Shown: in pieces, positions 28,748 through 64,000 of the stretch
How the letters are laid out: each line of letters starts with the position of its first letter
Position numbering within the stretch: position 1 is the first letter of the stretch
Assembly (NCBI RefSeq): GCF_000143415.4
Contig: NW_003314350.1
Coordinates: 186,001 to 250,000, forward strand
Direction: 5' to 3'
From: Selaginella moellendorffii
Taxonomy: Eukaryota > Plantae > Lycopodiophyta
DNA: 64,000 nucleotides
Translations under genes and position numbers: made by a program
Notes under the pieces: model-generated
What the model saw: only the letters and a program-made list of their open reading frames with translations
The model's database searches: none
Told to the model about the DNA's origin: nothing

Positions 28748-29860
28748 TTAATTCGTCTGGTGAAGCTTTGCAACTTTGAGGAGATACTCCAGCAGGATGG
28801 CAGGCTTGCTGAAGAACGGGCTGTGATCGGAATGAACATGAAAAACCCGTTTTGGTGGATTGTACTCGATCATCAAATCCTGCAGCTTGGGTGAAATCAG
28901 CTTGTCTTGTGTTGTCTTCACGAAGTACCTCGGAATTGATCCATACTTCTCCCGTGAGAGCTCAGCACTGTGGTGCTTGAAAAGCGGGCGAGGTTTCAAC
29001 AGCAACTTTGCTAGAACTACATCTTTGGATGGAGAAAGGTGGTAGAGCACGTCTTGTACTAAGTCAAGCTTGAATGCCGCAGCCACAGGGGTCTTTGATC
29101 CATTGGAGTAGAAGTACACTTTGCTGTTCTGTACGGCCTTGTTGTTAGTAATAACCTGTAAGTTGACACCAATTGAACACTTATAAGCATCCACTTTGCT
29201 GCTGCTCTTGATGTATCTATAGAACAGCTTTGGCAAAGAAGAAGAGAAATGAAATCAAGCAAGAGTTTTATATGAATTTAACAAGATCGAAACAATTTAC
29301 CTGGTTGTAAACAAAAGTCCCGTTGGAGCCCCTTGGAAACATATTTGCAGCCACAAACATAGCAGCTGCAATTTGGTGAGGGTATTTTTCCATCACATAG
29401 GTGAGACTGTCACCTCCGAGACTGTGACCAACTAAGATGATCTGCAGTAACAGCAAGTACTTGTTTTGGGTGAAGGCCAGCAATAAAACATAAATATCAG
29501 GTTTGTAATGTCGGTTACCTTGTGGCCACGCGGCACCGATCGGAGCAGCTGGAGTAGCGGGCCGGAGTATTGCTCCAGGCTGGTCACAGAACGGGGGTCA
29601 ACTCCGTTGATCCCCGCGCTGGTCAAGTCAACGTCGCTGACCCTGTGGCCTCGCTTCTGTAGTTGATCGATTACCTTGTACCAGCACCAAGCGCCGTGGC
29701 CTGCTCCATGAACAAGAACAAAATGGGAACTGGCATTCTGCTGCTGACTCGCTGTTCGGATCCTTGATGCTGTGGAAGTACCAATTAGATTGCCGCCATT
29801 GCAGAAGAATGATCCGAACAATCCAAAGAGTAGCAGCAGCAACACTGCAACCTGATGCAT
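28748..29860 (-). CDS. MES: Methylesterase (MES/SABP2/HNL/PNAE-type alpha/beta hydrolase) with N-terminal hydrophobic extension, probably 3 exons
   Basis: HFVLVHGAGHGAWCWYKV and GHRVSDVDL. The catalytic triad is intact: ILVGHSLGG (Ser), QDKLI (Asp), SDHSPFFSKP (His). Introns lie at about 29444-29518 and 29159-29300. Confidence 0.92.
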
Positions 29861-30647
29861 CTCCTTAGTGCACTCACCGAGATTCTCACCAAATTGGAGA
29901 AGCAGAACAAGCTGCTGCTTACCCTTGAATCAAAGGGCAATTGCTACACCACACATATATATTAAAAAAGAGATGTTGGAGCTGTCAACGTGGAAAGCAA
30001 GGGAGCAAACTGTAAGGCTTTTTCTATTATGACTTTCCGATTTATGATAAAATATGCAATTCCAATTTATTAGAAAGAGTGTGAACCGTTTGTTCCTAGC
30101 TTAGTAACCATGCGCTTGCCATGTTTGGGGACAACATCAATTACTCTTAACCAAGCTTGTGCTGTTAAGCTTCAAGAGACCCTCGTGGTAGTAAGAAGCT
30201 GCTAAATCACATCAAGTCACAGTTACCCAATGTCCAGGTCAACAGCCTCCTTGATGGCCAGGCCTGAATCGAGCTTCACCCTCGAGCAGCCCACTCCATG
30301 GATCTAGCTGCCAGTGATGTCATCGGCCGCTCATAGAAGTTGATCTATAATAACCATGACTTTAAATTGAAAAATAAATAATATAAAAGAAAAAACAGTT
30401 GACCATATACCTTTTAGAAAATTCTACATTATTCATTACAATAAAAATACATTATTTATTTAAATCTCTTATAAATATGAATAAACCGAGAAACCATATT
30501 GTATTATATGGTATTGCTAGATTAAACTTTATACTAGTTTAAGAGAAACAACTTTGGTAAATAACTAATATACTAATTTAAATATAGTTTATCTCTGTAC
30601 TGCATCTTTTGTGAAATCTGTAATTAAGGAACCAGAATCCTGTTCTA

Positions 30648-30836
30648 AACGTGAAACGTTCAAGTTGGTAGGACCGATAAATTGCATGGACCAGATAACT
30701 GTATGGAAAACGTGCACCGTATAAAACGACAAGATTTCTCTCCAAGTATGTGGCTATGTGTGTAACGTACAGAATACGGATCACACGGAAATAAAAAACG
30801 TGAAATGTGATCTCTAATAGCTCTGATAGTATAAAA
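30648..30836 (+). promoter_or_regulatory. Proximal promoter of oxygenase copy 1: three T/G-boxes and a TATA box
   Basis: AACGTG at 30648, 30709 and 30797; TATAAAA at 30830-30836, about 100 bp before the ATG. The block is largely conserved upstream of the other copies. Confidence 0.55.
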
Positions 30837-30935
30837 GACCCTTCTCCAGCCTCTGTTTCCTCAACCCACAGAGGAGTAGAAAACATTCTCCAATCAAGTT
30901 GATCAGATCGATCAAACAGTTTTCACCATTTCGAC

Positions 30936-31979
30936 ATGGCTGCAATCGTGTTGATGATTGCGTTTCTCGTGATGGCTGCAGCATGGAAGATGGTGTGTAT
31001 CCGCAAGAGAGAAGAGAGGGCACGATTTCTAGCGTCGCTCCACCCCGTGAGAGACGCACACAAGATCTTGTGGTACATGTACTCGGTGGAATTCCCCTTC
31101 CTCTCGCAAAAGGCGCTCGAGTTTGGCACAATCCGCACGCTCGGCATCCCGGGGATCACAAATCTGCTCTTCAAGACCAAGTACGGCCTCAAGGATCCGC
31201 AGAAGCGCGCCGCCCAGACCAACATTCTGGTGAGCGAGATGATCCACCACCACGTCGACAGCGATCGCGGCTCATACGCGGTGAGGAGATTGAATGGAAT
31301 CCACAACAAATTCAAGATCCCAAACGACCAATTCGCCTACGTCCTCTGCCTCAACGTGGTCGGCCCCATTGATTTCTCCGAGAGATTTGGATTCCGCAAG
31401 TGGACCGACAACGAGAAGGAGGCCGCGTATGTTGTGTGGCACGACGTGGGCGTGAGGATGGGCATCACAACCATCCCAGATAGCATTCCAGAGATGCGGG
31501 AGTACATTCGCGATTACGAGGCCAAGAACGCCATCTTCACGGACAAGAACAAGAGCATCGTCCAGGATCTCAAGCATCTGGTGCTGGATGCATTTCCTCG
31601 CCCCGTGCAGCCGCTGGTCGAGACTGGGATCTGTGCACTCATCGATCCCACAATCAGGAGCGCTGTTGGATTGGAAAAGCCTCCAGCAATTGTGGAGTGG
31701 ATCATCTTGGGTGCGTTCAAGCTGCTGGCCGGGAGCTTCGTCTCCGCGTTCTTGCCTCCCAGACGTGTGGAGGACGCAAAGGGCAGCATTGAGGTGGACT
31801 GGTGTCCTAATCCCGCTGCCAATCCGGAAGAGTACCGGCAGCTCAACGTGAATGTGTATCGGCCACCAGCATTCGAGAAGGGATACAAGCTGGCGGAGCT
31901 GGGAGCGCTGAAATCAGGCAAGCTTGGACCATACTACGATGGAGGCTTGCGCTGCCCCTTCCGGCAAATGCACGCATAG
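30936..31979 (+). CDS. MpaB/DUF2236 (Lcp-like) ER-bound heme oxygenase, copy 1 (E94Q, S143G vs consensus)
   Basis: Intronless 347 aa with an N-terminal TM anchor. Motifs EFPFLSQKALEFGTIRTLGIPGITNLL, PQKRxxxT, RRLNGIH..F.IPND.F.YVL, RFGFRKWT..EK.A...W..VG.RMGI..IP, GYKLAELG and C-terminal CPF match the MpaB/DUF2236 pattern. Confidence 0.85.
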   Translation: MAAIVLMIAFLVMAAAWKMVCIRKREERARFLASLHPVRDAHKILWYMYSVEFPFLSQKALEFGTIRTLGIPGITNLLFKTKYGLKDPQKRAAQTNILVSEMIHHHVDSDRGSYAVRRLNGIHNKFKIPNDQFAYVLCLNVVGPIDFSERFGFRKWTDNEKEAAYVVWHDVGVRMGITTIPDSIPEMREYIRDYEAKNAIFTDKNKSIVQDLKHLVLDAFPRPVQPLVETGICALIDPTIRSAVGLEKPPAIVEWIILGAFKLLAGSFVSAFLPPRRVEDAKGSIEVDWCPNPAANPEEYRQLNVNVYRPPAFEKGYKLAELGALKSGKLGPYYDGGLRCPFRQMHA

Positions 31980-32149
31980 AAATAGAACGGGCATAGGACA
32001 TTCGTTCGGAGAACAAAGCATCATTTGAAAATGCGTAGTTTACGTGAATCTTTTTGTAATTTTTGCAGAACAATATGGGATCCAAACAATTTAGAAACAC
32101 GCTCTGGCTAAAGACAATGATTCTAAGATATTACAGGTTGTAGTTAGAA

Positions 32150-35100
32150 GTCCAAGTTGACACGCTCACTTTACACCTAAGAGAAGGAAAAGTTTGTCAA
32201 GCGGAAGGAACAAAGGTCAAAAGCTTACCTCCACGAGAAAACTTCACGTTAATCCATGGGGCCTCAGCACGGCGCATGCCCACCATCAGGTGCAAACTGC
32301 CAAACTTTCCTTGGAGTCCAGCGCCACACTCACTGGCCAATCAGGATACCCGAGTACAACTTGAGCTCTCCCACTGAGATGGCTGCAAAGCCGCTTTCAA
32401 AGCTCGGCATCCCCCATGCCTATGCAAGGCAACAGACTCTAAACACACGAACAAAACACACCTTGGTACGTTCAAGGCAAAAGACTTTAAACACACGACA
32501 AAAACTCACCTTGGAGCAGTAGTACAACCGGCCAACAGGGTGCAACCCATCCGGAATCGTAAGGTCCTTCGATAACAAGGATGCTCCCCAGGCTGCAAAC
32601 TTATCCCGAACCTCCTGCTTCGTGAAGGCCTCTTCCGATATCGGCTCTCTGGGTGAGTCAGGGAACGAATGCAGAGAAGCTTCAACCAGCTGGTTTCCCT
32701 TGACCTGCACATATCCATCGATCTCAGAAATGGCATATCGCCATTCCCTCATGTCCATGGCATACACAAAACAAACGGAAATTGATTTCAAAACACGAAA
32801 CTAGAAACTGGTACATACATGAAGATATGTTGGAGGTCTTGCTTGCTTCTCTAAGCTGGCAGTGATCCACGTACATGAAAACCTGTACCAGATCTTAACG
32901 CAGATTTCAGATACTAACCAGCTTTACATAGCAGATCGCGGTGCTTCACATCAATTCCCAATCTTAGTGTACGCAATCCAGGATCGGAATGCCAATCAAG
33001 CCCTCCTCAGAGGAGGTGACATCGTTAGTAGGTTGATCAATGCCATCATGTGGAAACTCCAGGTCCAGAAAAACGGCCTCCTCATCCTGTGCCTCCTCAT
33101 CCTCCTCCAACTCTAAGCCCATCTCTAACTGGAACTCCCGCCACTCTGGTTCTTGCTCATCGTGCTTACACTCTGCCTTGTACAGCATGAAAAGGGCAAA
33201 TGAACACAAGAGCCTAGAGAAAATGCTTGCCGGCCCTTGTCTTGGAAAACCAATGTGGCGTACACATCTTTAACCTCCAACTACACGCACGGCGCTCTCC
33301 CTTCCTGGAAACATCTTTCGATTATACCTGGAATGTCGAGAAACTTAGACACAAGACGAGGTCAAGAATCCTTACCGATCATAGGGAGGCGTGGCATCTG
33401 GGAGCCTGTACCGCTTCTTAAATTGCTCTTCAGTAATCTTGCTAGGTGACACTTGGAATAGTGGTGCTTCTTGCTGTAGCGCTGCGAGTTGTGCTGTGGG
33501 AGCAACTCCTTGAGCAGAGCCCTAATGTGTTCCAAAGACGAACCAAAACCTGCATCCCTCTGTTTCTTATGAGCTGCCCCCCTCCACCTCGTCTGACTTT
33601 GGTGACTCTCTTTTGGTGATGACGGCATTGCCGTATATGATCGCGGTCACCGACTGGGTGATTCCACCTCGATTTTCGATCTGACATTGCCTACATGGTT
33701 TGAAACAATGTTTTAGCAAAGCTTTTGAAGTTTAGACAAAGTCCATTGAGCTCAAAGAACCTAGACATGAAAGGTTCTAGGAAGAACTTGGATCACTGTC
33801 ACAATCTTGCAATCCTTTGAGACTGCCCAGATGTTCGTCTGGGCAGCTCATAGTGTGGAATAAGTCAAATATTTGTCACCCAGCCTGTCAGCTAGAGCAA
33901 CTACCAAACAACAAAGAGACTTGGAACAAGATCTTTCTTAGGAAGTGGCAGACATCCCTAGATTGCAGGAGTTGTGTTGCTGCTTTATGCAAGCTTGTAT
34001 TACCCTAGAAAGGTGTAATGAACAAACTTAGTATATCTAACATGTGCAATGCTTCCCTGATCTCTTGCTAACACAACCTGGTTACTCTTTGCTTGCTAAT
34101 GGCAGCCTCACAATGCAAAACAAGCACATGCACATGACCCAGCCTCACAGCACACTGCAGATGCTGATGTGAAATTGCTTCCCACTTTTATTCTCTACCT
34201 TTGAGATTCTTGGGATCTCAGGAAATGATCTTGTCCTCATCTTCAAACACCATAAGTAGTTTGCCATGGTGGCAGCCTCTTTGCTTGGACAAAAGTGGCA
34301 TGAGTTACAAGGAAACATACACTTCTACAGTTTTCTTATTGGTAACTTTAGCTTTAAAAGGGGACTCTGTTTGAGATCTGTGACTCACAAAATAATCTTT
34401 ATAGATAGAAATTTTCAAACATACATCTTGCAATATAATTGAATTAGTACTTGCCCAGCAAATACTGGATGAATATAAAAATAAATTTTATACACCTGAG
34501 TGAGAGCTGAGTGCATGTGATATTCAAGTGTTGAGTGTTCAAGTCTTGAAGAATGTTGTAGGGCTGTGTTTCCACTTTTTGTGTGACAGCTTAGCTAGGG
34601 TAGTTATTTTGGGATCAGGGACTGGTTTATCTTGGTTAATTGTAGCTGGAGGATCTGATCTTGGCTGCTCGCTCTCTCTTTTATCCTTGCAGTTCTTTTT
34701 GTGATTTTCTCTAGGTTTTCCTCCTCCTCAGCATCATCAAATACAGAGTTTTTCCTCCTCCTCAACATCATGAAATATAGAGTTCTCCATATGCTAATGC
34801 TGTTGTGCCCATGTCATAACTTTAGATTTTGGTGCAGCTTGTTGGATGAAAATTGCATTGCTTTCTACTTGGCTTAAGCTTGTGTAGGCAATTGTCCTGC
34901 ATATGCAAGCCTTGTGTCTGACAGATTCCACATATAGGCTAGTACCTAATCTGTTTCCTCGGATGCTGGCTTGTAGCTCATTGTCTGAATTGGAGGAGAC
35001 AATGGGTGTTGAAAGAAAACTAGTGCTCAAGCCGAAGATGGCAGTGATGATGGCAAGGTCTTGATAGGAGATTTCTTGGCTTGTAAAAATAATCTTCCTT

Positions 35101-36992
35101 TGAAATAGATCATTTGAAGTAAACATTTGAAGAAAGGTGATGGCCATCAAGCCATATACACGGTCAATGAGAGCATCGTCCATTGTTACGTGCTGTGTTG
35201 AGTTGCTATAAGTGGATATCAACCGACCATGTACACATATAACCATGAAAAAAGGATGGTCATTGTTGCACTCAATGCAGTGTCCAATCTGCAAGTTAAT
35301 CCTAGATAGCCAAAATTTGTGGCAAACACACCAGCCCAAGGACACAGAGATGTCTTGAGAGGCAAAAGGAATTAAGCATCCCTTTATCTTAAATGAATAA
35401 ATATAAGCCATTGAACAAATAAATATGACATACATACCCCATTAAAGTCTCTTTGATACATAGAAGTTATGGATTTCAAGTGGTCATGAATTGCATTCCA
35501 TGGTGCTAGTCCAGGCACATTGTAAACTATAGTTGGAGGTCCAATCTTGGAAATATTATGATCACTTGTTCCTTCGATGTCGTGAAATATTTTGAGTGGC
35601 ATGTGACGTCCAAACCATTCTGATTTGACTTTATGATACACGAAAGACATACATGCTGCAACTTGAACCAGAGTATGGTAGTTATTATTAACAGCTGTAT
35701 TGAAAGCTCAAGCATACCTTGTAAATATACTCAAAGTCGTTAGCATGTTTCTGCTCTGCTCATTTAGGTCAACTGAGGAAGTATGCTGCAACAGTGCAAA
35801 ATGCTGATCATGTGGTTTCTAGCATGAGATCATGCAAAAGAACCAAGTTGGATATAGGAATTATATCAAGCATAGGTGGCCTCAGTGGTGGGAACTCACA
35901 AACCAGGGAGGAAGCAATAATATCAATAGCAAATCTAAAGGAATAGACCACCAAACATATCAGCAATATGTTGAGAAAGAGAAGCTGTAGCAATATGAAC
36001 ACCACCAATATCAGTGAAGTCAACATTGGGGGAGGTGGTAGAGCTAGTTCTCCACAAGCTGTTGCAGAAGCCATCATAAGTTCCATAGCAAGATAGGGTG
36101 TATAGTAGCAATGGCGAGCTCCAGATAGCAGCTGCAAGTTAGCAATTTGATCCACTAAAGAATGGCCACTGGTTTGAAAATGCTACTTGTAATAGAACAC
36201 CACAGATTATCTTGTGATATGTCACTAATGTCACGCTTTGCTGTGTCAAAAAATAGTAAGAAAATATCACCCAAAAAATGTTTTTTTACATAGTGCTACC
36301 ATTGAATCAAAAGTTGAAGTGAAGTAATCCACATGTAGTTTCGTAAGAATTTTGTAAGAAACCATGTTAAGAGAAAACCATGTACCTGTTGAAATAAATG
36401 CCATCACAGTGGTAAGTGTTGCATGGTTGGCATGAAATAAACATACCACTAATGTCAAGTATGCTATTAGAACTTTTGCCAACTAAAATGCAAATTAAAA
36501 TATCATTTGAAAGAAAAAGTGTAGCATACCACTATTGTGAGGAGCACCACTTGACTTTACATTAAATTTGATTAATCAAAAAAGCAAAAATGTCAGTAAT
36601 ACATACTAGGAATGTTGTGGTGCTTGGTGACATTAGGTTTCGTTGCAACACAGTTCACAGCTGCGTCATTATTATCCCCAAGCTCAGTGGTTGCTATAGC
36701 ATTCTTACAATGTTAAAGGAAAGTTTTGGTTATAATGGAAATTATACCTGGGTGTAAGTTCAAGAACTTGCTACATACATTGTCAAGAGTTTGATCTGAT
36801 GAATGAGACTTGCTATTGTGAACCTCCTGAACCTGTGATGTGCTAGAAATGTAGTCAACTGCATCATCACTTGAAGACGACAGACTAAAACAAAGAAGAA
36901 CTTTTGGAATGTTGAAAGCCTAAAAAACATATGGTAAATGGGACCAATGCATGTACTAATATTGACACATTGCATGGAGGCAGCCATTGCTG
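32150..36992 (-). pseudogene. Decayed multi-exon gene of unknown family (possibly TE-derived), repeated in each unit
   Basis: Minus-strand coding-like fragments are bounded by GT/AG sites, e.g. SSSDDAVDYISSTSQVQEVHNSKSHSSDQTLDNVCSKFLNLHP, MDDALIDRVYGLMAITFLQMF, LELEEDEEAQDEEAVFLDLEFPHDG and WRYAISEIDGYVQVKGNQLVEASLH. They are broken by many stops, frameshifts and unit-specific deletions. Confidence 0.55.
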
Positions 36993-37054
36993 TTGCAGAA
37001 GAATGATCTGAACAATCCAAAGAGTAGCAGCAGCAACACTGCAGCCTGATGCAT
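36993..37054 (-). pseudogene. 5' fragment of the MES gene (first ~21 codons)
   Basis: Matches 29799-29860 (MHQAAVLLLLLFGLFRSFFCN), then switches to spacer sequence. Confidence 0.85.
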
Positions 37055-38025
37055 CTCCTTAGTGCACTCACCGAGATTCTCACCAAATTGGAGAAGCTGA
37101 ACAAGCTGCTGCTTACCGTTGAATCAAAGGGCAATTGCTACACCAAGCAACCATGCGCTTGCCATGTTTGGGGACAACATTACTGTTGCAATTACTCTTA
37201 ACCAAGCTTGTGCTGTTAAGCTTCAAGAGACCCTCGTGGTAGTAAGAAGCTGCCAAATCACATCAAGTCACAGTTACCCAATGTCCAGGTCAACAGCCTT
37301 CTTGATGGGCGGCCAGGCCTGAATCGAGCTTCACCCTCGAGCAGCCCACTCCATGGATCTAGCTGCTAGTGATGTCATCCATCCGGCATGGCCGCTCCAA
37401 GAGCTTTATACCAAATGCATAGAAGTTGATCTATAATAACCATGACTTTAAATTGAAAAATAAATAATATAAAAGAAAATCAACTTGACCATATACCTTT
37501 TAGAAAATTCTACATTATTCATTACAATAAAAATACATTATTTATTTAAATCTCTTTATAAATATGAATAAACCGAGAAATTATATTATATGGTATTTCT
37601 TGAAATTATGCTAGATTAAACTTTATATTAGTTTAAGAGAAACAACTTTGGTAAATAACGAATATACTAATTTAAATATAGTTTATCTCTGGTTTCTACT
37701 GCATCTTTTGTAATTAAGGAACCAGAATCCAGTTCTAAACGTGAAACGTTCAAGTTGGTAGGACCGATAAATTGCATGGACCAGATAACTGTATGGAAAA
37801 CGTGCAGCGTATAAAACAACAACATTTCTCTACAAGCATGTGGCTATGTGTGTAACGTACAGAATACAGATCACATGGAAATAAGAAACGTGAAATATGA
37901 TCTCTAATAGCTCTGATAGTATAAAAGACCCTTCTCCAGCCTCTGTTTCCTCAACCCACAGAGGAGTAGAAAACATTCTCCAATCAAGTTGATCAGATCG
38001 ATCAAACAGTTTTCACCATTTCGAA

Positions 38026-39069
38026 ATGGCTGCAATCGTGTTGATGATTGCGTTTCTCGTGATGGCTGCAGCATGGAAGATGGTGTGTATCCGCAAGAGA
38101 GAAGAGAGGGCACGATTTCTAGCGTCGCTCCACCCCGTGAGAGATGCACACAAGATCTTGTGGTACATGTACTCGGTGGAATTCCCCTTCCTCTCGCAAA
38201 AGGCGCTCGAGTTTGGCACAATCCGCACGCTCGGCATCCCGGGGATCACAAATCTGCTCTTCAAGACCAAGTACGGCCTCAAGGATCCGCAGAAGCGCGC
38301 CGCCGAGACCAACATTCTGGTGAGCGAGATGATCCACCACCACGTCGACAGCGATCGCGGCTCATACGCGGTGAGGAGATTGAATGGAATCCACAACAAA
38401 TTCAAGATCCCAAACGACCAATTCGCCTACGTCCTCTGCCTCAACGTGGTCAGCCCCATTGATTTCTCCGAGAGATTTGGATTCCGCAAGTGGACCGACA
38501 ACGAGAAGGAGGCCGCGTATGTTGTGTGGCACGACGTGGGCGTGAGGATGGGCATCACAACCATCCCAGATAGCATTCCAGAGATGCGGGAGTACATTCG
38601 CGATTACGAGGCCAAGAACGCCATCTTCACGGACAAGAACAAGAGCATCGTCCAGGATCTCAAGCATCTGGTGCTGGATGCATTTCCTCGCCCCGTGCAG
38701 CCGCTGGTCGAGACTGGGATCTGTGCACTCATCGATCCCACAATCAGGAGCGCTGTTGGATTGGAAAAGCCTCCAGCAATTGTGGAGTGGATCATCTTGG
38801 GTGCGTTCAAGCTTCTGGCCGGGAACTTCGTGTCCGCGTTCTTGCCTCCCAGACGTGTGGAGGATGCAAAGGGCAGCATTGAGGTGGACTGGTGTCCTAA
38901 TCCCGCTGCCAATCCGGAGGATTACCGGCAGCTCAACGTGAATGTGTATCGGCCACCAGCATTCGAGAAGGGATACAAGCTGGCGGAGCTGGGAGCGCTG
39001 AAATCAGGCAAGCTTGGACCATACTATGATGGAGGCTTGCGCTGCCCCTTCCGGCAAATGCACGCATAG
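38026..39069 (+). CDS. MpaB/DUF2236-like oxygenase, copy 2 (S267N, E299D)
   Basis: Intact 347-aa ORF nearly identical to copy 1. Confidence 0.85.
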   Translation: MAAIVLMIAFLVMAAAWKMVCIRKREERARFLASLHPVRDAHKILWYMYSVEFPFLSQKALEFGTIRTLGIPGITNLLFKTKYGLKDPQKRAAETNILVSEMIHHHVDSDRGSYAVRRLNGIHNKFKIPNDQFAYVLCLNVVSPIDFSERFGFRKWTDNEKEAAYVVWHDVGVRMGITTIPDSIPEMREYIRDYEAKNAIFTDKNKSIVQDLKHLVLDAFPRPVQPLVETGICALIDPTIRSAVGLEKPPAIVEWIILGAFKLLAGNFVSAFLPPRRVEDAKGSIEVDWCPNPAANPEDYRQLNVNVYRPPAFEKGYKLAELGALKSGKLGPYYDGGLRCPFRQMHA

Positions 39070-45000: not shown

Positions 45001-45121
45001 TCTTGGTGACAGACAAAAACAAAGAAGAACTTTTGGAATGTTGAAAGCCTAAGAAACATATGGTAAATGAGCCCAATGCATGTACTAATATTGACACGTT
45101 GCATGGAGGCAACCGCTGCTG

Positions 45122-51183: not shown

Positions 51184-51926
51184 NNNNNNNNNNNNNNNNN
51201 NNNNNNNNNNNNNNNNNNNNNNNNNNNNNNNNNNNNNNNNNNNNNNNNNNNNNNNNNNNNNNNNNNNNNNNNNNNNNNNNNNNNNNNNNNNNNNNNNNNN
51301 NNNNNNNNNNNNNNNNNNNNNNNNNNNNNNNNNNNNNNNNNNNNNNNNNNNNNNNNNNNNNNNNNNNNNNNNNNNNNNNNNNNNNNNNNNNNNNNNNNNN
51401 NNNNNNNNNNNNNNNNNNNNNNNNNNNNNNNNNNNNNNNNNNNNNNNNNNNNNNNNNNNNNNNNNNNNNNNNNNNNNNNNNNNNNNNNNNNNNNNNNNNN
51501 NNNNNNNNNNNNNNNNNNNNNNNNNNNNNNNNNNNNNNNNNNNNNNNNNNNNNNNNNNNNNNNNNNNNNNNNNNNNNNNNNNNNNNNNNNNNNNNNNNNN
51601 NNNNNNNNNNNNNNNNNNNNNNNNNNNNNNNNNNNNNNNNNNNNNNNNNNNNNNNNNNNNNNNNNNNNNNNNNNNNNNNNNNNNNNNNNNNNNNNNNNNN
51701 NNNNNNNNNNNNNNNNNNNNNNNNNNNNNNNNNNNNNNNNNNNNNNNNNNNNNNNNNNNNNNNNNNNNNNNNNNNNNNNNNNNNNNNNNNNNNNNNNNNN
51801 NNNNNNNNNNNNNNNNNNNNNNNNNNNNNNNNNNNNNNNNNNNNNNNNNNNNNNNNNNNNNNNNNNNNNNNNNNNNNNNNNNNNNNNNNNNNNNNNNNNN
51901 NNNNNNNNNNNNNNNNNNNNNNNNNN
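51184..51926. other. Assembly gap (743 N)
   Basis: Run of N. The flanks match spacer positions 35947 and 36698 of unit 1, which have 750 bp between them. Confidence 1.
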
Positions 51927-52245
51927 AGCATTCTTACAATGTTAAAGGAAAGTTTTGGTTATAATGGAAATTATACCTGTGTGTAAGTTCAAGAACTTGT
52001 TACATATGTCGTCAAGAGTTTGATCTCATGAATGAGACTTGCTATTGTGAACCTCATGAACCTGTGATGTGCTAGAAATGTAGTCACCTGCATCATCACT
52101 TGAAGACAACACTGTACTTTCCATCCTTGGCAACAGACAAAAACAAAGAAGAACTTTTGGAATGTTGAAAGCCTAAGAAACATATGGTAAATGTGCCCAA
52201 TGCATGTCCTAATATTGACACATTGCATGGAGGCAGCTGCTGCTG

Positions 52246-52307
52246 TTGCAGAAGAATGATCCAAACAATCCAAAGAGTAGCAGCAGCAACACTACAGCCT
52301 GATGCAT
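52246..52307 (-). pseudogene. 5' fragment of the MES gene
   Basis: Matches 29799-29860. Confidence 0.85.
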
Positions 52308-53420
52308 CTCCTTAGTGCACTCACCGAGATTCTCACCAAATTGGAGAAGCAGAACAGGCTGCTGCTTACCGTTGAATCAAAGGGCAATTGCTACACCAAG
52401 CATATATATGTTGGAGCTGTCAACGTGGAAAGCAAGGGAGCAAACTGTAAGGCTTTTTCTATTATGACTTTCCAATTTATGATAAAATATGGCAATTCCA
52501 ATTTATTACAAAGAGTGTCAACCGTTTGTTCCTAGCTTAGTAAACCCCTAACCATGCGCGTGCCATGTTTGGGGACAACATTACTGTTGCAATTACTCTT
52601 AACCAAGCTTGTGCTGTTAAGCTTCAAGAGACCCTCGTGGTAGTAAGAAGCTGCCAAATCACTTCAAGTCACAGTTACCCAATGTCCAGGTCAACAGCCT
52701 TCTTGATGGGCAGCCAGGCCTGAATCGAGCTTCACCCTCGAGCAGCCCACTCCATGGATCTAGCTGCCAGTGATGTCATCCATCTGGTATGGCCGCTCCA
52801 AGAGCTTTATACCAAATGCATAGAAGTTGATCTATAATAACCATGACTTTAAATTGAAAAATAAATAATATAAAAGAAAATAAACTTGACCATATACCTT
52901 TTAGAAAATTCTAGATTATTTATTACAATAAAAATACATTATTTATTTAAATCTCTTATAAATATGAATAAACCGAGAAACCATATTGTATTATACGGTA
53001 TTTCTTGAAATTATGCTAGATTAAACTGTATACTAGTTTAAGAGAAACAACCAAAAAAACTTTGGTTATACTAATTTAAATATAGTTTATCTCTGGTTTC
53101 TACTGCATCTTTTATAAAATCTGTAACCGAATCCTGTTCTAAACGTGAAACGTTCAAGTTGGTAGGACCGATAAATTGCATGGACCAGATAACTGTATGG
53201 AAAACGTGCACCGTATAAAACAACAAGATTCCTCTCCAAGTATGTGGCTATGTGTGTAACGTACAAAATACGGATCACACGGAAATAAAAAAACGTGGCT
53301 GATAGCTCGGATAGTATAAAAGACCCTTCTCCAGCCTCTGTTTCCTCAACCCACAGAGGAGTAGAAAACATTCTCCAATCAAGTTGATCAGATCGATCAA
53401 ACAGTTTTCACCATTTCGAA

Positions 53421-54464
53421 ATGGCTGCAATCGTGTTGATGATTGCGTTTCTCGTGATGGCTGCAGCATGGAAGATGGTGTGTATCCGCAAGAGAGAAGA
53501 GAGGGCACGATTTCTAGCGTCGCTCCACCCCGTGAGAGACGCACACAAGATCCTGTGGTACATGTACTCGGTGGAATTCCCCTTCCTCTCGCAAAAGGCG
53601 CTCGAGTTTGGCACAATCCGCACGCTGGGCATCCCGGGGATCACAAATCTGCTCTTCAAGACCAAGTACGGCCTCAAGGATCCGCAGAAGCGCGCCGCCG
53701 AGACCAACATTCTGGTGAGCGAGATGATCCACCACCACGTCGACAGCGATCGCGGCTCGTACGCGGTGAGGAGATTGAATGGAATCCACAACAAATTCAA
53801 GATCCCAAACGACCAATTCGCCTACGTCCTCTGCCTCAACGTGGTCAGCCCCATTGATTTCTCCGAGAGATTTGGATTCCGCAAGTGGACCGACAACGAG
53901 AAGGAGGCCGCGTATGTTGTGTGGCACGACGTGGGCGTGAGGATGGGCATCACAACCATCCCAGATAGCATTCCAGAGATGCGGGAGTACATTCGCGATT
54001 ACGAGGCCAAGAACGCCATCTTCACGGACAAGAACAAGAGCATCGTCCAGGATCTCAAGCATCTGGTGCTGGATGCATTTCCTCGCCCCGTGCAGCCGCT
54101 GGTCGAGACTGGGATCTGTGCACTCATCGATCCCACAATCAGGAGCGCTGTTGGATTGGAAAAGCCTCCAGCAATTGTGGAGTGGATCATCTTGAGTGCG
54201 TTCAAGCTGCTGGCCGGGAGCTTCGTGTCCGCGTTCTTGCCTCCCAGACGTGTGGAGGATGCAGAGGGCAGCATTGAGGTGGACTGGTGTCCTAATCCCG
54301 CTGCCAATCCGGAAGAGTACCGGCAGCTCAACGTGAATGTGTATCGGCCACCAGCATTCGAGAAGGGATACAAGCTGGCGGAGCTGGGAGCGCTGAAATC
54401 AGGCAAGCTTGGACCATACTACGATGGAGGCTTGCGCTGCCCCTTCCGGCAAATGCACGCATAG
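53421..54464 (+). CDS. MpaB/DUF2236-like oxygenase, copy 4 (G259S, K282E)
   Basis: Intact 347-aa ORF nearly identical to the other copies. Confidence 0.85.
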   Translation: MAAIVLMIAFLVMAAAWKMVCIRKREERARFLASLHPVRDAHKILWYMYSVEFPFLSQKALEFGTIRTLGIPGITNLLFKTKYGLKDPQKRAAETNILVSEMIHHHVDSDRGSYAVRRLNGIHNKFKIPNDQFAYVLCLNVVSPIDFSERFGFRKWTDNEKEAAYVVWHDVGVRMGITTIPDSIPEMREYIRDYEAKNAIFTDKNKSIVQDLKHLVLDAFPRPVQPLVETGICALIDPTIRSAVGLEKPPAIVEWIILSAFKLLAGSFVSAFLPPRRVEDAEGSIEVDWCPNPAANPEEYRQLNVNVYRPPAFEKGYKLAELGALKSGKLGPYYDGGLRCPFRQMHA

Positions 54465-57400
54465 AAATAGAACGGGCATAGGACATTCGTTTGGAGAACA
54501 AAGCATCATTTGAAAATGCGTAGTTTACGTGAATCTTTTTGTAATTTTTGCAGAACAATATGGGATCCAAACAATTTAGAAACACGCTCTGGCTAAAGAC
54601 AATGATTCTAAGATATTACAGGTTGTAGTTAGAAGTCTAAGTTGACACGCTCACTTTACACCTAAGAGAAGGAAAAGCTTGTCAAGCGAAAGGAACAAAG
54701 GTCAAAAGCTTACCTCCACGAGAAAACTTCACGTTAATCCATGGGGCCTCAGCACGGCGCATGCCCACCATCAGGTGCAAACTGCCAAACTTTCCTTGGA
54801 GTCCAGCGCCACACTCACTGGCCAATCAGGATACCCGAGTACAACTTGAGCTCTCCCACTGAGATGGCTGCAAAGCCGCTTTCAAAGCTCGGCATCCCCC
54901 ATGCCTATGCAAGGCAACAGACTCTAAACACACGAACAAAACACACCTTGGTACGTTCAAGGCAAAAGACTTTAAACACACGACAAAAACTCACCTTGGA
55001 GCAGTAGTACAACCGGCCAACAGGGTGCAACCCATCCGGAATCGTAAGGTCCTTCGATAACAAGGATGCTCCCCAGGCTGCAAACTTATCCCGAACCTCC
55101 TGCTTCGTGAAGGCCTCTTCCGATATCGGCTCTCTGGGTGAGTCAGGGAACGAATGCAGAGAAGCTTCAACCAGCTGGTTTCCCTTGACCTGCACATATC
55201 CATCGATCTCAGAAATGGCATATCGCCATTCCCTCATGTCCATGGCATACACAAAACAAACAGAAATTGATTTCAAAACACGAAACTAGAAACTGGTACA
55301 TACATGAAGATATGTTGGAGGTCTTGCTTGCTTCTCTAAGCTGGCAGTGATCCACGTACATGAAAACCTGTACCAGATCTTAACGCAGATTTCAGATACT
55401 AACCAGCTTTACATAGCAGATCGCGGTGCTTCACATCAATTCCCAATCTTAGTGTACGCAATCCAGGATCGGAATGCCAATCAAGCCCTCCTCAGAGGAG
55501 GTGACATCGTTAGTAGGTTGATCAATGCCATCATGTGGAAACTCCAGGTCCAGAAAAACGGCCTCCTCATCCTGTGCCTCCTCATCCTCCTCCAACTCTA
55601 AGCCCATCTCTAACTGGAACTCCCGCCACTCTGGTTCTTGCTCATCGTGCTTACACTCTGCCTTGTACAGCATGAAAAGGGCAAATGAACACAAGAGCCT
55701 AGAGAAAATGCTTGCCGGCCCTTGTCTTGGAAAACCAATGTGGCGTACACATCTTTAACCTCCAACTACACGCACGGCGCTCTCCCTTCCTGGAAACATC
55801 TTTCGATTATACCTGGAATGTCGAGAAACTTAGACACAAGACGAGGTCAAGAATCCTTACCGATCATAGGGAGGCGTGGCATCTGGGAGCCTGTACCGCT
55901 TCTTAAATTGCTCTTCAGTAATCTTGCTAGGTGACACTTGGAATAGTGGTGCTTCTTGCTGTAGCGCTGCGAGTTGTGCTGTGGGAGCAACTCCTTGAGC
56001 AGAGCCCTAATGTGTTCCAAAGACGAACCAAAACCTGCATCCCTCTGTTTCTTATGAGCTGCCCCCCTCCACCTCGTCTGACTTTGGTGACTCTCTTTTG
56101 GTGATGACGGCATTGCCGTATATGATCGCGGTCACCGACTGGGTGATTCCACCTCGATTTTCGATCTGACATTGCTTGCCACAATCTACATGGTTTGAAA
56201 CAATGCTTTAGCAAAGCTTTTGAAGTTTAGACAAAGTCCATTGAGCTCAAAGAACCTAGACATGAAAGGTTCTAGGAAGAACTTGGATCACTGTCACAAT
56301 CTTGCAATCCTTTGAGACTGCCCAGATGTTCGTCTGGGCAGCTCATAGTGTGGAATAAGTCAAATATTTGTCACCCAGCCTGTCAGCCAGAGCAACTACC
56401 AAACAACAAAGAGACTTGGAACAAGATCTTTCTTAGGAAGTGGCAGACATCCCTAGATTGCAGGAGTTGTGTTGCTGCTTTATGCAAGCTTGTATTACCC
56501 TAGAAAGGTGTAATGAACAAACTTAGTATATCTAACATGTGCAATGCTTCCCTGATCTCTTGCTAACACAACCTGGTTACTCTTTGCTTGCTAATGGCAG
56601 CCTCACAATGCAAAACAAGCACATGCACATGACCCAGCCTCACAGCACACTGCAGATGCTGATGTGAAATTGCTTCCCACTTTTATTCTCTACCTTTGAG
56701 ATTCTTGGGATCTCAGGAAATGATCTTGTCCTCATCTTCAAACACCATAAGTAGTTTGCCATGGTGGCAGCCTCTTTGCTTGGACAAAAGTGGCATGAGT
56801 TACAAGGAAACATACACTTCTACAGTTTTCTTATTGGTAACTTTAGCTTTAAAAGGGGACTCTGTTTGAGATCTGTGACTCACAAAATAATCTTTATAGA
56901 TAGAAATTTTCAAACATACATCTTGCAATATAATTGAATTAGTACTTGCCCAGCAAATACTGGATGAATATAAAAATAAATTTTATACACCTGAGTGAGA
57001 GCTGAGTGCATGTGATATTCAAGTGTTGAGTGTCCAAGTCTTGAAGAATGTTGTAGGGCTGTGTTTCCACTTTTTGTGTGACAGATTAGCTAGGGTAGTT
57101 ATTTTGGGATCAGGGACTGGTTTATCTTGGTTAATTGTAGCTGGAGGATCTGATCTTGGCTGCTCACTCTCTCTTTTATCCTTGCAGTTCTTTCTTGTGA
57201 TTTTCTCTAGGTTTTCCTCCTCCTCAGCATCATCAAATACAGAGTTTTTCCTCCTCCTCAACATCATGAAATATAGAGTTCTCCATATGCTAATGCTGTT
57301 GTGCCCATGTCATAACTTTAGATTTTGGTGCAGCTTGTTGGATGAAAATTGCATTGCTTTCTACTTGGCTTAAGCTTGTGTAGGCAATTGTCCTGCATAT

Positions 57401-60075
57401 GCAAGCCTTGTGTCTGACAGATTCCACATATAGGCTAGTACCTAATCTGTTTCCTCGGATGCTGGCTTGTAGCTCATTGTCTGAATTGGAGGAGACAATG
57501 GGTGTTGAAAGAAAACTAGTGCTCAAGCCGAAGATGGCAGTGATGATGGCAAGGTCTTGATAGGAGATTTCTTGGCTTGTAAAAATAATCTTCCTTTGAA
57601 ATAGATCATTTGAAGTAAACATTTGAAGAAAGGTGATGGCCATCAAGCCATATACACAGTCAATGAGAGCATTGTCCATTGTTACGTGCTGTGTTGAGTT
57701 GCTACAAGTGGATATCAACCGACCATGTACACATATAACCATGAAAAAAGGATGGTCATTGTTGCACTCAATGCAGTGTCCAATCTGCAAGTTAATCCTA
57801 GATAGCCAAAATTTGTGGCAAACACACCAGCCCAAGGACACAGAGATGTCTCGAGAGGCAAAAGGAATTAAGCATCCCTTTATCTTAAATGAATAAATAT
57901 AAGCCATTGAACAAATAAATATGACATACATACCCCATTAAAGTCTCTTTGATACATAGAAGTTATGGATTTCAAGTGGTCATGAATTGCATTCCATGGT
58001 GCTAGTCCAGGCACATTGTAAACTATAGTTGGAGGTCCAATCTTGGAAATATTATGATCACTTGTTCCTTCGATGTCGTGAAATATTTTGAGTGGCATGT
58101 GACGTCCAAACCATTCTGATTTGACTTTATGATACACGAAAGACATACATGCTGCAACTTGAACCAGAGTATGGTAGTTATTATTAACAGCTGTATTGAA
58201 AGCTCAAGCACACCTTGTAAATATACTCAAAGTCGTTAGCATGTTTCTGCTCTGCTCATTTAGGTCAACTGAGGAAGTATGCTGCAACAGTGCAAAATGC
58301 TGATCATGTGGTTTCTAGCGTGAGATCATGCAAAAGAACCAAGTTGGATATAGGAATTATATCAAGCATAGGTGGCCTCAGTGGTGGGAACTCACAAACC
58401 AGGGAGGAAGCAATAATATCAATAGCAAATCTAAAGGAATAGACCACCAAACATATCAGCAATATGTTGAGAAAGAGAAGCTGTAGCAATATGAACACCA
58501 CCAATATCAGTGAAGTCAACATTGGGGGAGGTGGTAGAGCTAGTTCTCCACAAGCTGTTGCAGAAGCCATCATAAGTTCCATAGCAAGATAGGGTGTATA
58601 GTAGCAATGGCGAGCTCTAGATAGCAGCTGCAAGTTAGCAATTTGATCCACTAAAGAGTGGCCACTGGTTTGAAAATGCTACTTGTAATAGAACACCACA
58701 GATTATCTTGTGATATGTCACTAATGTCACGCTTTGCTGTGTCAAAAAATAGTAAGAAAATATCACCCAAAAAATGTTTTTTTACATAGTGCTACCATTG
58801 AATCAAAAGTTGAAGTGAAGTAATCCACATGTAGTTTCGTAAGAATTTTGTAAGAAACCATGTTAAGAGAAAACCATGTACCTGTTGAAATAAATGCCAT
58901 CACAGTGGTAGGTGTTGCATGGTTGGCATGAAATAAACATACCACTAATGTCAAGTATGCTATTAAAACTTTTGCCAACTAAAATGCAAATTAAAATATC
59001 ATTTGAAAGAAAAAGTGTAGCATACCACTATTGTGAGGAGCACCACTTGACTTTACATTAACTTTGATTAATCAAAAAAGCAAAAATGTCAGTAATACAT
59101 ACTAGGAATGTCGTGGTGCTTGGTGACATTAGGTTTCGTTGCAACACAGTTCACAGCTGCGTCATTATTATCCCCAAGCTCAGTGGTTGCTATAGCATTC
59201 TTACAATGTTAAAGGAAAGTTTTGGTTATAATGGAAACTATACCTGGGTGTAAGTTCAAGAACTTGCTACATACGTTGTCAAGAGTTTGATCTGATGAAT
59301 GAGACTTGCTATTGTGAACCTCCTGAACCTGTGATGTGCTAGAAATGTAGTCAACTGCATCATCACTTGAAGACGACAGACTAAAACAAAGAAGAACTTT
59401 TGGAATGTTGAAAGCCTAAGAAACATATGGTAAATGGGACCAATGCATGTACTAATATTAGAAAATGCATAGAAGTTGATCTATAATAACCATGACTTTA
59501 AATTGAAAAATAAATAATATAAAAGAAAATCAACTTGACCATATACCTTTTAGAAAATTCTACATTATTCATTACAATAAAAATACATTATTTATTTAAA
59601 TCTCTTTATAAATATGAATAAACCGAGATATTATATTATATGGTATTTCTTGAAATTATGCTAGATTAAACTTTATATTAGTTTAAGAGAAACAACTTTG
59701 GTAAATAACGAATATACTAATTTAAATATGGTTTATCTCTGGTTTCTACTGCATCTTTTGTAATTAAGGAACCAGAATCCAGTTCTAAACGTGAAACGTT
59801 CAAGTTGGTAGGACCGATAAATTGCATGGACCAGATAACTGTATGGAAAACATGCACCGTATAAAACAACAAGATTTCTCTACAAGCATGTGGCTATGTG
59901 TGTAACGTACAGAATACGGATCACACGGAAATAAAAAACGTGAAATATGATCTCTAATAGCTCTGATAGTATAAAAGACCCTTCTCCAGCCTCTGTTTCC
60001 TCAACCCACAGAGGAGTAGAAAACATTCTCCAATCAAGTTGATCAGATCGATCAAACAGTTTTCACCATTTCGAA

Positions 60076-61119
60076 ATGGCTGCAATCATGTTGATGATTG
60101 CGTTTCTCGTGATGGCTGCAGCATGGAAGATGGTGTGTATCCGCAAGAGAGAAGAGAGGGCACGATTTCTAGCGTCGCTCCACCCCATGAGAGACGCACA
60201 CAAGATCTTGTGGTACATGTACTCGGTGGAATTCCCCTTCCTCTCGCAAAAGGCGCTCGAGTTTGGCACAATCCGCACGCTCGGCATCCCGGGGATCACA
60301 AATCTGCTCTTCAAGACCAAGTACGGCCTCAAGGATCCGCAGAAGCGCGCCGCCGAGACCAACATTCTGGTGAGCGAGATGATCCACCACCACGTCGACA
60401 GCGATCGCGGCTCGTACGCGGTGAGGAGATTGAATGGAATCCACAACAAATTCAAGATCCCAAACGACCAATTCGCCTACGTCCTCTGCCTCAACGTGGT
60501 CAGCCCCATTGATTTCTCCGAGAGATTTGGATTCCGCAAGTGGACCGACAGCGAGAAGGAGGCCGCGTATGTTGTGTGGCACGACGTGGGCGTGAGGATG
60601 GGCATCACAACCATCCCAGATAGCATTCCAGAGATGCGGGAGTACATTCGCGATTACGAGGCCAAGAACGCCATCTTCACGGACAAGAACAAGAGCATCG
60701 TCCAGGATCTCAAGCATCTGGTGCTGGATGCATTTCCTCGCCCCGTGCAGCCGCTGGTCGAGACTGGGATCTGTGCACTCATCGATCCCACAATCAGGAG
60801 CGCTGTTGGATTGGAAAAGCCTCCAGCAATTGTGGAGTGGATCATCTTGGGTGCGTTCAAGCTGCTGGCCGGGAGCTTCGTGTCCGCGTTCTTGCCTCCC
60901 AGACGTGTGGAGGATGCAAAGGGCAGCATTGAGGTGGACTGGTGTCCTAATCCCGCTGCCAATCCGGAAGAGTACCGGCAGCTCAACGTGAATGTGTATC
61001 GGCCACCAGCATTCGAGAAGGGATACAAGCTGGCGGAGCTGGGAGCGCTGAAATCAGGCAAGCTTGGACCATACTACGATGGAGGCTTGCGCTGCCCCTT
61101 CCGGCAAATGCACGCATAG
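60076..61119 (+). CDS. MpaB/DUF2236-like oxygenase, copy 5 (V5M, V38M, N159S)
   Basis: Intact 347-aa ORF nearly identical to the other copies. Confidence 0.85.
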   Translation: MAAIMLMIAFLVMAAAWKMVCIRKREERARFLASLHPMRDAHKILWYMYSVEFPFLSQKALEFGTIRTLGIPGITNLLFKTKYGLKDPQKRAAETNILVSEMIHHHVDSDRGSYAVRRLNGIHNKFKIPNDQFAYVLCLNVVSPIDFSERFGFRKWTDSEKEAAYVVWHDVGVRMGITTIPDSIPEMREYIRDYEAKNAIFTDKNKSIVQDLKHLVLDAFPRPVQPLVETGICALIDPTIRSAVGLEKPPAIVEWIILGAFKLLAGSFVSAFLPPRRVEDAKGSIEVDWCPNPAANPEEYRQLNVNVYRPPAFEKGYKLAELGALKSGKLGPYYDGGLRCPFRQMHA

Positions 61120-63069
61120 CAATAGAACGGGCATAGGACATTCGTTCGGAGAACCAAGCATCATTTAAAAATGATGAATCTTTTTGTAATTTTTGCAGAT
61201 AGCACAAAACCATTATTAATAGTACGGGATCCAAACAATTTAGAAACACAGAGACAAAAATATTGCAGGTTGTAGTTAGAAGTCTAAGTTGACACGCTCG
61301 CTTACACCTAAGAGAACGAAAAGCTTGTCAAGCGGAAGGAATAAAGATCAAAAGCTTACCTCCACGAGAAAACCTCACGTTAATCCATGGGGCTAGCATG
61401 CCCACCATCAGGTGCGAACTACCAAACTTTCCTTCGAGTCCAGCGCCGCACTCACTGGCCAATCAGGGTACCCGAGTACAACTTGAGCTCTCCCACTGAG
61501 ATGGCTGCAAAGCCGCTTTCAAAGCTCGGCATCCCCCATGCCTGTTCAAGGCAACAGACTTTAAACACACGACAAAAACTCACCTTGGAGCAACCGGCCA
61601 ACAGGGTGCGACCCATCCGGAATCGTAATGTCCTCCGATAACAAGGATGCTCTCCAGGCTGCAAACTTATCCCGAACCTCCTGCGTGGTGAAGGCGCGTG
61701 TGAACTCTTCCGAGATCGGCTCTGTGGGTGAGTCAGGGAACTAATGCAGAGAAGCTTCAACCAGCTGGTTTCCCTTGACCTGCACATATTCATCGATCTC
61801 AGAAATGGCATATCGCCATTCCCTCATATCCATGGCATACAGAAAACAAACAGAAATTGATTTCAAAACACGAAACACGAAACTGGTACATACATGAAGA
61901 TATGTTGGAGGTCTTGCTTGCTTCCCTAAGCTAGCAGTGATCCACGTACACGAAAACCTGTACCAGATCTTAGCGCAGATGTCAGATACTAACCAGCTTT
62001 ACATACCTGTAGCAGATTGCGGTGCTTCACATCAAATTCCCAATCTTAGTGTACGCACATCCAGGATCGAGGTGGTGAACGCTAGAATGCCTGAATGCCA
62101 ATCAAGCTCGGCCTGTTCCTCCTCAGAGGAGGTGACATTGTTAGTAGGTTGATCAATGCCATCATGTGGAAACTCCAGGTCCAGAAAAACGGCCTCCTCA
62201 TCCTGTGCCTCCTCATCCTCCTCCAACTCTAAGCCCATTTCTAACTGGAACTCCCCTCACTCTGGTTCCTGCTCATCGTGCTTACACTCTGCCTTGTACA
62301 GCATGAAAAGGGCAAATGAACACAAGAGCCTAGAGAAAATGCTTGCCGGCCCTTGTCTTGGAAAACCAATGTGGCGTACACCTCCAACCACATGCACGGC
62401 GCTCTCCCTTCCTGGAAACCTCTTTCGATTATACCTGGAATGTCGAGAAACTTAGACACAAGACGAGGCCAAGAATCCTTACCGATTCTTGGAGGCGTGG
62501 CATCTGGGATCTGTTCGATCAGCCTGTACCTCTTCTTAAATTGCTCTTTAGTAATCTTGCTAGGTGACACTTGGAATAGTGGTGTTTCTTGCTGTAGCGC
62601 TGCGAGTTGTGCTGTGGGAGCAACTCCTTGAGCAGAGCCCTAATGCGTTCCAAAAACGAACCAAAACCTGCATCCCTCTGTTTCTTATGAGCTGCCCCCC
62701 TCCACCTCTTCTGACTTTGGTGCCTCTCTTTTGGTGATGACGGCATTGCCGTATATGATCGAGGTCACGGACTTGCCCCGAGGATGGGTGATTCCACCTC
62801 GATTTTCGATCTGACATTGCTTGCCACAATCTACATGGAATCAAGGAGTTTGAAACAATGCTTTAGCAAACTCTTAAGCTTTTGAAGTTTAGACAAAGGC
62901 CATCGAGCTCAAAGAACCTAGACATTAAAGGTTCTTGGAAGGATAGTGAGAACTTGGATCACTGTCACAACCTTGCAATCCTTTGAGACAGCCCAGATGT
63001 TCGGAATGTTGAAAGCCTAAGAAACATATGGTAAATGGGCCCCATGCATATACTAATATTCCGCTGCTG

Positions 63070-63131
63070 TTGCAGAAGAATGATCTGAACAATCCAAAGA
63101 GTAGCAGTAGCAACACTGCAGCCTGATGCAT
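63070..63131 (-). pseudogene. 5' fragment of the MES gene, fused into the 68-aa chimeric ORF 62925-63131
   Basis: MHQAAVLLLLLFGLFRSFFCN followed by spacer-derived residues. Confidence 0.85.
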
Positions 63132-64000
63132 CTCCTTAGTGCACTCACTGGGAAAGTCACCAAATTGGAGAAGCTGAACAAGCTGCTGCTTACCGTTAAA
63201 TCAAAGGGCAATTGCTACACCAAGCATATATATTAAAAAAGAGATGCTGGAGCTGTCAACGTGGAAAGCAAGGGAGCAAACTGTAAGGCTTTTTCTATTA
63301 TGACTTTCCAATTTATGATAAAATGTGGCAAGTCCAATTTATTAGAAAGAGTGTCAACCGTTTGTTCCTAGCTTAGTAAACCCCTAACCATGCGCTTGCC
63401 ATGTTTGGGGACAACATTACTGTTGCAATGACTCTTAACCAAGCTTGTGCTGTTAAGCTTCAAGAGACCCTCGTGGTAGTAAGAAGCTGCCAAGTCACAC
63501 CAAGTCACAGTTACCCAATGTGCAGGTCAACGGCCTCCTTGATGGGCGGCCTGGCCTGAATCGACGAGCAGTGCACTCCATGGATCTAGCCGCCAGTGGT
63601 GTCATCCATCCGGCATGGCCGCTCCAAGAGCTTTATACAGAAGTTGATCTATAATAATCATGACTTTAATTTGACAACTAAACTTGACCATATACCTTTT
63701 AAAAATTCTAGATTATTCATTACAATCCATACGTTATTCATTTAAATCTCTTATAAAAATGAATAAACCAAAAAACCATATTGTATTTAATAGTTTACTT
63801 TGAAATTATGCTAGATTAAACTGTATACTAGTTTAAGAGAAACAAACTGGACTACAATTTGGTAAATCACGAGTATACTAATTTAAATATAGACTATCTC
63901 TGGTTTCTAGGAAATCTGTAATTAAGGAACCAGAATCCTGTTCTAAACGTGAAACGTTCAAGTTGGTAGGACCGATAAATTGCATGGACCAGATAACTGT

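Follow-up and report, generated by a model that had tools for sequence, protein, structure and literature searches.

Probable concerted evolution of a tandem array of putative oxygenase genes in Selaginella moellendorffii

The DNA analysed in this study (hereafter the window) is a stretch of 64,000 nucleotides from the lycophyte Selaginella moellendorffii, corresponding to positions 186,001 to 250,000 of contig NW_003314350.1 in assembly GCF_000143415.4. The window covers the left end of a tandem array of a putative oxygenase gene, of which five copies lie inside the window. The array occupies the window from position 29799 to its end, and a profile scan finds ordinary plant genes to the left of it. 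When the window is compared with itself by BLAST, homology to the other units begins at position 29799, which is the left edge of unit 1 (29799-36888, + strand), and unit 1 is 97.2% identical to unit 4 across 7.2 kb. All units are arranged head-to-tail on the + strand, with ATG-to-ATG distances of 7090, 8207, 7188 and 6655 base pairs (bp) in the self-comparison. The upstream part of a sixth unit (63000-64000, + strand) reaches the end of the window, as a preliminary description of this DNA had stated; in the self-comparison, positions 59532-59842 align with positions 63681-64000. The ATG of the sixth unit is projected from unit 5 at approximately position 64234, past the window end and within the range of 64,230-64,240 given in that description.

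The five genes inside the window are open reading frames (ORFs) of 1044 nucleotides (nt), which encode 347 amino acid residues (aa) and start with an ATG at positions 30936, 38026, 46233, 53421 and 60076 of the + strand. None of them contains a stop or an indel. An alignment of the five proteins has no gaps and places those of units 1 to 5 at 2, 2, 1, 2 and 3 residues from the consensus respectively, which bears out the earlier report of five full ORFs at one to three residues from it. The coding sequences (CDSs) of the five copies vary at 20 sites, half of them synonymous (10) and half non-synonymous (10), and 17 of these 20 sites are variable in one copy only. The conservation includes the promoter-proximal region. 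A 23-nt stretch containing TATAAAA, located approximately 106 bp ahead of the ATG, has the same sequence in each of the five units, and only one of the 111 bases from this stretch to the ATG varies among them, so that the TATA-proximal promoter is preserved as had been noticed. The conserved tract begins at the TATA box (about −106), ends with the stop codon and represents approximately 1.15 kb of a unit of approximately 7 kb. This tract, which consists of the TATA box, the 5’ leader and the ORF, is hereafter termed the cassette. The cassette of unit 1 is located at 30825-31979 (TATAAAA at 30830-30836, ORF at 30936-31979), and its product matches PF09995 with 47 bits. The cassettes of units 2 (37915-39069, ORF at 38026-39069), 3 (46122-47276, ORF at 46233-47276) and 5 (59965-61119, ORF at 60076-61119) are assigned by ORF and alignment, and the protein encoded by the cassette of unit 4 (53310-54464, ORF at 53421-54464) is identical to the database protein P0005. 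All five cassettes lie on the + strand.

The gene is intronless, and its predicted product is a membrane-anchored protein of the MpaB/trans-anethole oxygenase (TAO)/Lcp type, which is uncharacterised in plants. The match to PF09995 (MpaB/Lcp catalytic domain) covers residues 86-251, with 47 bits against a cut-off of 23 and an E value of 4e-12. A profile built from the Selaginella sequences matches trans-anethole oxygenase (8s1j) with an E value of 9e-4, and the R-x3-T and N-x-I-H motifs of the two are aligned (KRAAETN with KRADDT, and LNGIH with VNKIH). R91, T95 and H123 are invariant in all ten Selaginella sequences and align with R, T and H of 8s1j. The Arg-x3-Thr motif and the downstream His of this domain are reported to be essential in Lcp and to include its haem ligand. 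The structural model of the protein is of low confidence, with a mean predicted local distance difference test (pLDDT) score of 56.5 and a predicted template modelling score of 0.60. The best Foldseek matches of this model are 8s1j (E value of 9e-7, template modelling (TM) score of 0.56-0.63) and Lcp (5o1m and 5o1l; E value of 5e-3, TM score of 0.46-0.52). Globins are the next matches after them, and the model, weak as it is at a pLDDT of 56.5, has an all-alpha globin-like core. Residues 1-22 are hydrophobic and are followed by a basic stretch, and a helix is modelled at residues 2-34. These data suggest that the product is probably a haem oxygenase, which may bind haem b and cleave C=C bonds in a manner dependent on O2.

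The closest named proteins are the S. moellendorffii ‘uncharacterized protein LOC112349549’ and its relatives. A fern, a moss and a chytrid contain relatives of approximately 40% identity. Among language-model clusters, the nearest consist of fungal PF09995 proteins, which is no evidence of transfer. A search of the literature on plant DUF2236/MpaB genes gave nothing relevant. MpaB’ from the mycophenolic acid pathway of Penicillium is associated with the membrane of the endoplasmic reticulum and cleaves, by oxidation, a C=C bond in a farnesyl side chain (10.1101/524025). The spikemoss protein resembles MpaB’ in that it belongs to the PF09995 family and has an N-terminal hydrophobic anchor, although this likeness is only at the level of the family. 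Unlike the gene for MpaB’, the spikemoss gene belongs to a tandem array and has no recognisable biosynthetic partners clustered around it. 8s1j and Lcp (5o1l and 5o1m) are the best matches of the model, and 8s1j shares the aligned motifs, but these are soluble or secreted bacterial enzymes, with identities of only 15-21% to the spikemoss protein in the structural alignments.

The spacers between the cassettes form a higher-order repeat, in which unit 1 resembles unit 4 and unit 2 resembles unit 5. The downstream regions of units 1 and 4 are 0.5% diverged over 5 kb with two indels; the non-coding downstream spacer of unit 1 (31980-36963) is 99.5% identical to positions 54465-59459 of unit 4. 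The spacers of units 2 and 5 are 1.3-2.1% diverged. The upstream 1.1 kb of unit 4, in contrast to its nearly identical downstream region, is 4-5% diverged from that of unit 1 with 38 indels, and this result indicates that the units are mosaics. The upstream region of unit 4 (52246-53310) is an outlier, with 21 substitutions specific to unit 4 in addition to the 38 indels relative to unit 1, and its rearranged stretch stops 6 bp ahead of the conserved TATA motif. Downstream of the gene, units 2 (39480-39524) and 5 (61544-61588) contain a tandem duplication of 45 bp that is absent from units 1 and 4 and represents a further marker of the spacer lineage of units 2 and 5.

The spacers are rich in rearrangements. 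In total, 35 indel events are detected in 1734 alignable columns of the flanks, as compared with none in the 1044 columns of the CDS. Approximately 4.1 kb of the spacer of unit 2 (40946-45032) has no counterpart in unit 5 in the self-comparison, and the homology of unit 5 passes from position 63003 directly to the upstream region of the next unit. The spacer of unit 3 contains an 83-bp inversion (48703-48785), which is 96-98% identical on the minus strand to positions 34372-34454, 41567-41649 and 56867-56949 of units 1, 2 and 4 respectively. The spacer indels, the deletion of about 4 kb and the inversion listed in the preliminary description are thus all confirmed. Its term ‘decaying spacers’ is appropriate for most pairs of units, but not for units 1 and 4, the spacers of which are nearly identical over 5 kb.

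A second gene or a transposon is not found in the spacers by a Pfam scan of 10 ORFs of unit 1 and 82 open frames of units 2 and 3, and the same scan of units 1 to 3 detects no cupin or germin-like remnant. The open frames of the 4.1-kb segment of unit 2 contain no Pfam domain. An ORF of 213 aa is present in the spacers of units 1 (34794-35435, − strand) and 4 (57290-57931, − strand). It has no match in Pfam or NCBIfam, and is probably not a gene, because its homologue in unit 2 is interrupted by approximately 1 kb (42170-43143). The observed/expected ratio of CpG is 0.38-0.39 in the spacers (0.38 for 31980-36963; 31980-37000 and 39070-45200 for the range), as compared with 0.93 in the CDS (30936-31979) and 0.90 in the 600 bp upstream of it (30332-30935). 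This pattern suggests that methylated spacers alternate with unmethylated gene cassettes.

The CDSs are much less diverged than their flanks. The divergence of the CDS is 0.38-1.05% in all ten pairs of units, whereas that of the flanks is 3.5-8% in eight of the ten pairs. This unit alignment supports the contrast between intact CDSs and decaying spacers for these eight pairs, but the contrast fails for units 1 and 4, which are more alike in the spacer than in the CDS. The number of substitution steps per site is 9.3% for the flanks, approximately 4% for synonymous sites, 1.3% for non-synonymous sites and 0.9% for the 111 bp of the 5’ leader and core promoter. Thus, the divergence of silent sites and of the 5’ untranslated region is 2-10 times lower than that of the flanks. 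The synonymous divergence (dS) is lower than the spacer divergence in eight of the ten pairs, for example 0.43% as compared with 5.9% for units 1 and 3, and 0.86% as compared with 5.3% for units 4 and 5. Units 1 and 4 are exceptional in that dS is 2.16% and the spacer divergence is 0.65%, so that the CDS is the more diverged part. The pairwise dS does not track the spacer distance.

The CDS and the spacers also differ in genealogy. The genealogy of the spacers is ((1,4),(2,5),3). Patterns in which unit 2 equals unit 5, or unit 1 equals unit 4, are found in 29-31 of the 1343 ungapped columns of the flanks, but in none of the 1044 columns of the CDS. All three informative sites of the CDS contradict the spacer genealogy, because sites 807 and 840 group unit 1 with unit 3 and site 339 groups unit 4 with unit 5. 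The sites of the CDS and the spacers together give all four gametes, indicating that exchange has occurred between the CDS and the spacer. The conflicting genealogies and the low divergence of the silent sites and the leader indicate that constraint at the protein level is insufficient by itself to account for the conservation. As judged from these comparisons, the cassette appears to be homogenised across the units independently of the spacers.

Hypermutation of methylated CpG was considered as the main cause of the contrast between the cassettes and the spacers and was rejected, because transitions of the CpG type represent only approximately 20% of the spacer mismatches, the divergence calculated from transversions only is several times higher in the spacers than in the CDS, and the upstream region, which is not depleted of CpG, is still 3.5-5% diverged. 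No claim is made for GC-biased conversion; the GC content at third codon positions is 0.72, which is not unusual for this window (0.70 for an Aha1-like ORF).

The CDS also shows signs of selection. With 10 non-synonymous and 10 synonymous changes, as compared with a neutral expectation of 15:5, the dN/dS ratio (omega) that had been called for is 0.29-0.37, with a binomial P of 0.006-0.024 depending on the transition bias assumed. When the ratio of indels to substitutions in the flanks (0.30) is applied to 20 substitutions, approximately six indels (6.1) are expected in the CDS, but none is observed (P of 0.002). In contrast to these tests, the intactness of the ORFs with respect to stop codons is uninformative, since 20 random substitutions create no stop with a chance of 0.45-0.53. 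Purifying selection thus appears to be real but modest; the estimate is made from five copies and 20 sites, and inference for each copy is blurred by conversion. ‘Purifying selection or gene conversion focused on the oxygenase’, as first proposed, receives support in both of its parts, and conversion gives the stronger signal, namely the conflict between the genealogies of the CDS and the spacers and the low silent divergence.

These results suggest that the array probably evolves by concerted evolution, in which gene conversion and unequal exchange are combined with modest purifying selection. Unequal exchange would have generated the higher-order duplication by which units 1 and 2 resemble units 4 and 5. 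Gene conversion, a mechanism that we infer from the patterns of divergence, would repeatedly homogenise the cassette, and all copies would be purged of frameshifts and of some amino acid changes by purifying selection. After diverging and accumulating indels, the flanks would drop out of conversion, which would make the contrast between the cassette and the spacer sharper. Arrays of ribosomal DNA (rDNA), of histone genes and of other tandem genes are multigene families under concerted evolution. The array of S. moellendorffii resembles the rDNA and histone families in its head-to-tail units, its homogenised functional segment with diverged spacers, its mosaic genealogies and its higher-order repeats. 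It differs from them in that it is small (approximately eight or more units), carries a gene for an enzyme, and is homogenised over only approximately 1.15 kb of approximately 7 kb.

Several points weigh against concerted evolution of the array. The 3’ limit of the conserved tract is the stop codon, and a 12-bp indel begins 2 bp beyond it; a tract that ends at the stop codon is predicted more naturally by selection on the ORF than by conversion. However, this end may also reflect flank indels that block the extension of conversion tracts. The changes are unpolarised, with no outgroup, and all evolutionary tests are carried out on five copies. Only 20 sites of the CDS are variable, so that omega and the limits of the tract are based on small counts. 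In addition, misplaced reads among nearly identical copies could flatten copy-specific differences.

The number of copies in the genome exceeds that in the window. A cluster of proteins of at least 90% identity contains 22 distinct proteins on at least eight scaffolds, among them three further ones on the scaffold of the array itself, so that this scaffold carries approximately eight or more units (five in the window and at least three further ones). The cluster members listed are 345-348 aa long, apart from one model of 300 aa. In a protein tree, the copies located on this scaffold and the arrays of two other scaffolds radiate as an unresolved star with very short branches. The Sanger-era assembly contains two haplotypes, the alleles of which differ by well under 1% (PMC3095285), and the haploid copy number is therefore below the listed count. 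Two paralogues, 69% and 93% identical, are each present as a nearly identical pair on two scaffolds (P0002/P0018 and P0008/P0009). Each pair probably represents both haplotypes of a single-copy locus, which suggests that the amplification is limited to one branch of the family.

Selection for gene dosage is a possible explanation for the persistence of the array, though not the one we favour. According to it, the many copies would persist owing to an advantage of high oxygenase levels, and selection on expression would preserve the promoter, the leader and the ORF of each copy. The five copies and all listed members of the cluster are indeed intact, the core promoter and leader vary as little as the CDS, omega is below 1 for changes that are mostly copy-specific, and a Pfam scan detects no other recognisable gene in the spacers of units 1 to 3. 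However, conversion and ordinary purifying selection yield the same pattern at any copy number, and with a divergence of approximately 1% since the last homogenisation the intact ORFs need little explanation, as the chance of escaping a stop given above indicates. Because conversion alone keeps the copies alike regardless of dosage, the array is not by itself evidence that a high dosage is favoured.

The array may instead be a young amplification that evolves neutrally, with the extra copies as redundant passengers of recent conversion or duplication and their intactness as a matter of time. The low divergence of the CDS (0.4-1%), the star-like protein tree with very short branches and the unsurprising lack of a stop among 20 substitutions are consistent with this explanation. 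It is unlikely, since the ratio of 10:10 departs from the neutral ratio of 15:5, and the CDS has none of the approximately six indels expected, at the P values given above.

It is quite improbable that the array is an artefact of assembly, in which the contig to the right of a gap represents the other haplotype placed in tandem, or in which reads are mixed, so that both the copy number and the uniformity of the CDS are overstated. The gap concerned (51184-51926) is a run of 743 N, the only one in the window, and is located in the spacer of unit 3, where it separates units 1 to 3 from units 4 to 6. In addition to this position, the coexistence of two haplotypes in the assembly with alleles well under 1% apart (PMC3095285), and the spacer divergence of units 1 and 4 (0.5-0.65%), which is within the allelic range, are compatible with an artefact. 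However, the right-hand contig opens in array spacer, whereas unit 1 is preceded by unique DNA; units 1 and 4 are separated by 5% divergence and 38 indels in their upstream regions; the 4.1-kb segment of unit 2 is missing from unit 5; and the self-comparison gives at most 89.5% identity between the upstream regions of units 6 and 3. Moreover, copies with flanks 5% apart would not be confused by an assembler, and further copies are annotated along the same scaffold. The gap lies 3.9 kb past the stop codon of unit 3 and 1.5 kb ahead of the ATG of unit 4, and touches no oxygenase ORF. Both sides of the gap are colinear with units 1 and 4, in that its left edge (50341-51183) corresponds to 35105-35947 and 57601-58443, and its right edge, from 51927 onward, to the regions from 36698 onward and from 59194 onward. 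In these two units the missing piece therefore measures 750-751 bp, which approximates the 743 N, although the sequence alone would also be compatible with whole extra units hidden in the gap. A listed ORF of 308 aa (51005-51931, − strand) is an artefact of reading through the N run.

Purifying selection without conversion, by which the CDS and the spacers would share one history and the CDS would only be slower, is very unlikely: it agrees with an omega below 1 and with a conserved tract that ends exactly at the stop codon, but the divergence of synonymous sites and of the non-coding 5’ leader is likewise far below that of the flanks, no CDS site has a pattern of the spacer tree as compared with approximately six expected at silent sites alone, and dS of units 1 and 4 is approximately threefold above their spacer divergence.

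The region to the left of the array contains an intronless pentatricopeptide-repeat (PPR) gene (243-3809, + strand), which encodes a protein of 1188 aa with a C-terminal E motif, and a second intronless PPR gene (25105-27114, − strand), both assigned by Pfam scan. It also contains the Aha1-like ORF mentioned above, which is an uninterrupted frame of 319 aa (16659-17618, − strand) with Aha1_N and AHSA1 domains of the Hsp90 co-chaperone type. This ORF appears intronless.

The mode of evolution of the array is ordinary for gene arrays, and the array is a further case of a known kind. Concerted evolution, if it is the correct explanation, is seen here cleanly and on a small scale in an array of plant enzyme genes, with a tract that can be delimited (approximately 1.15 kb) and a history that is separable from the spacer history. 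The array also gives reason for caution, because intact genes amid decaying spacers are not by themselves evidence for dosage selection. A more far-reaching proposal, which we consider doubtful, is that the copy number itself is adaptive, and that the cassette of a putative membrane-bound, C=C-cleaving haem oxygenase, present in more than 20 copies and several arrays, raises the flux through a lineage-specific pathway. If so, this pathway might process or detoxify a prenylated or phenylpropene-type metabolite, and conversion would serve to keep each cassette functional. The array represents an uncharacterised plant branch of the MpaB/TAO/Lcp oxygenases that is strongly amplified in one lycophyte, and this branch is a reasonable candidate for a role in specialised metabolism.

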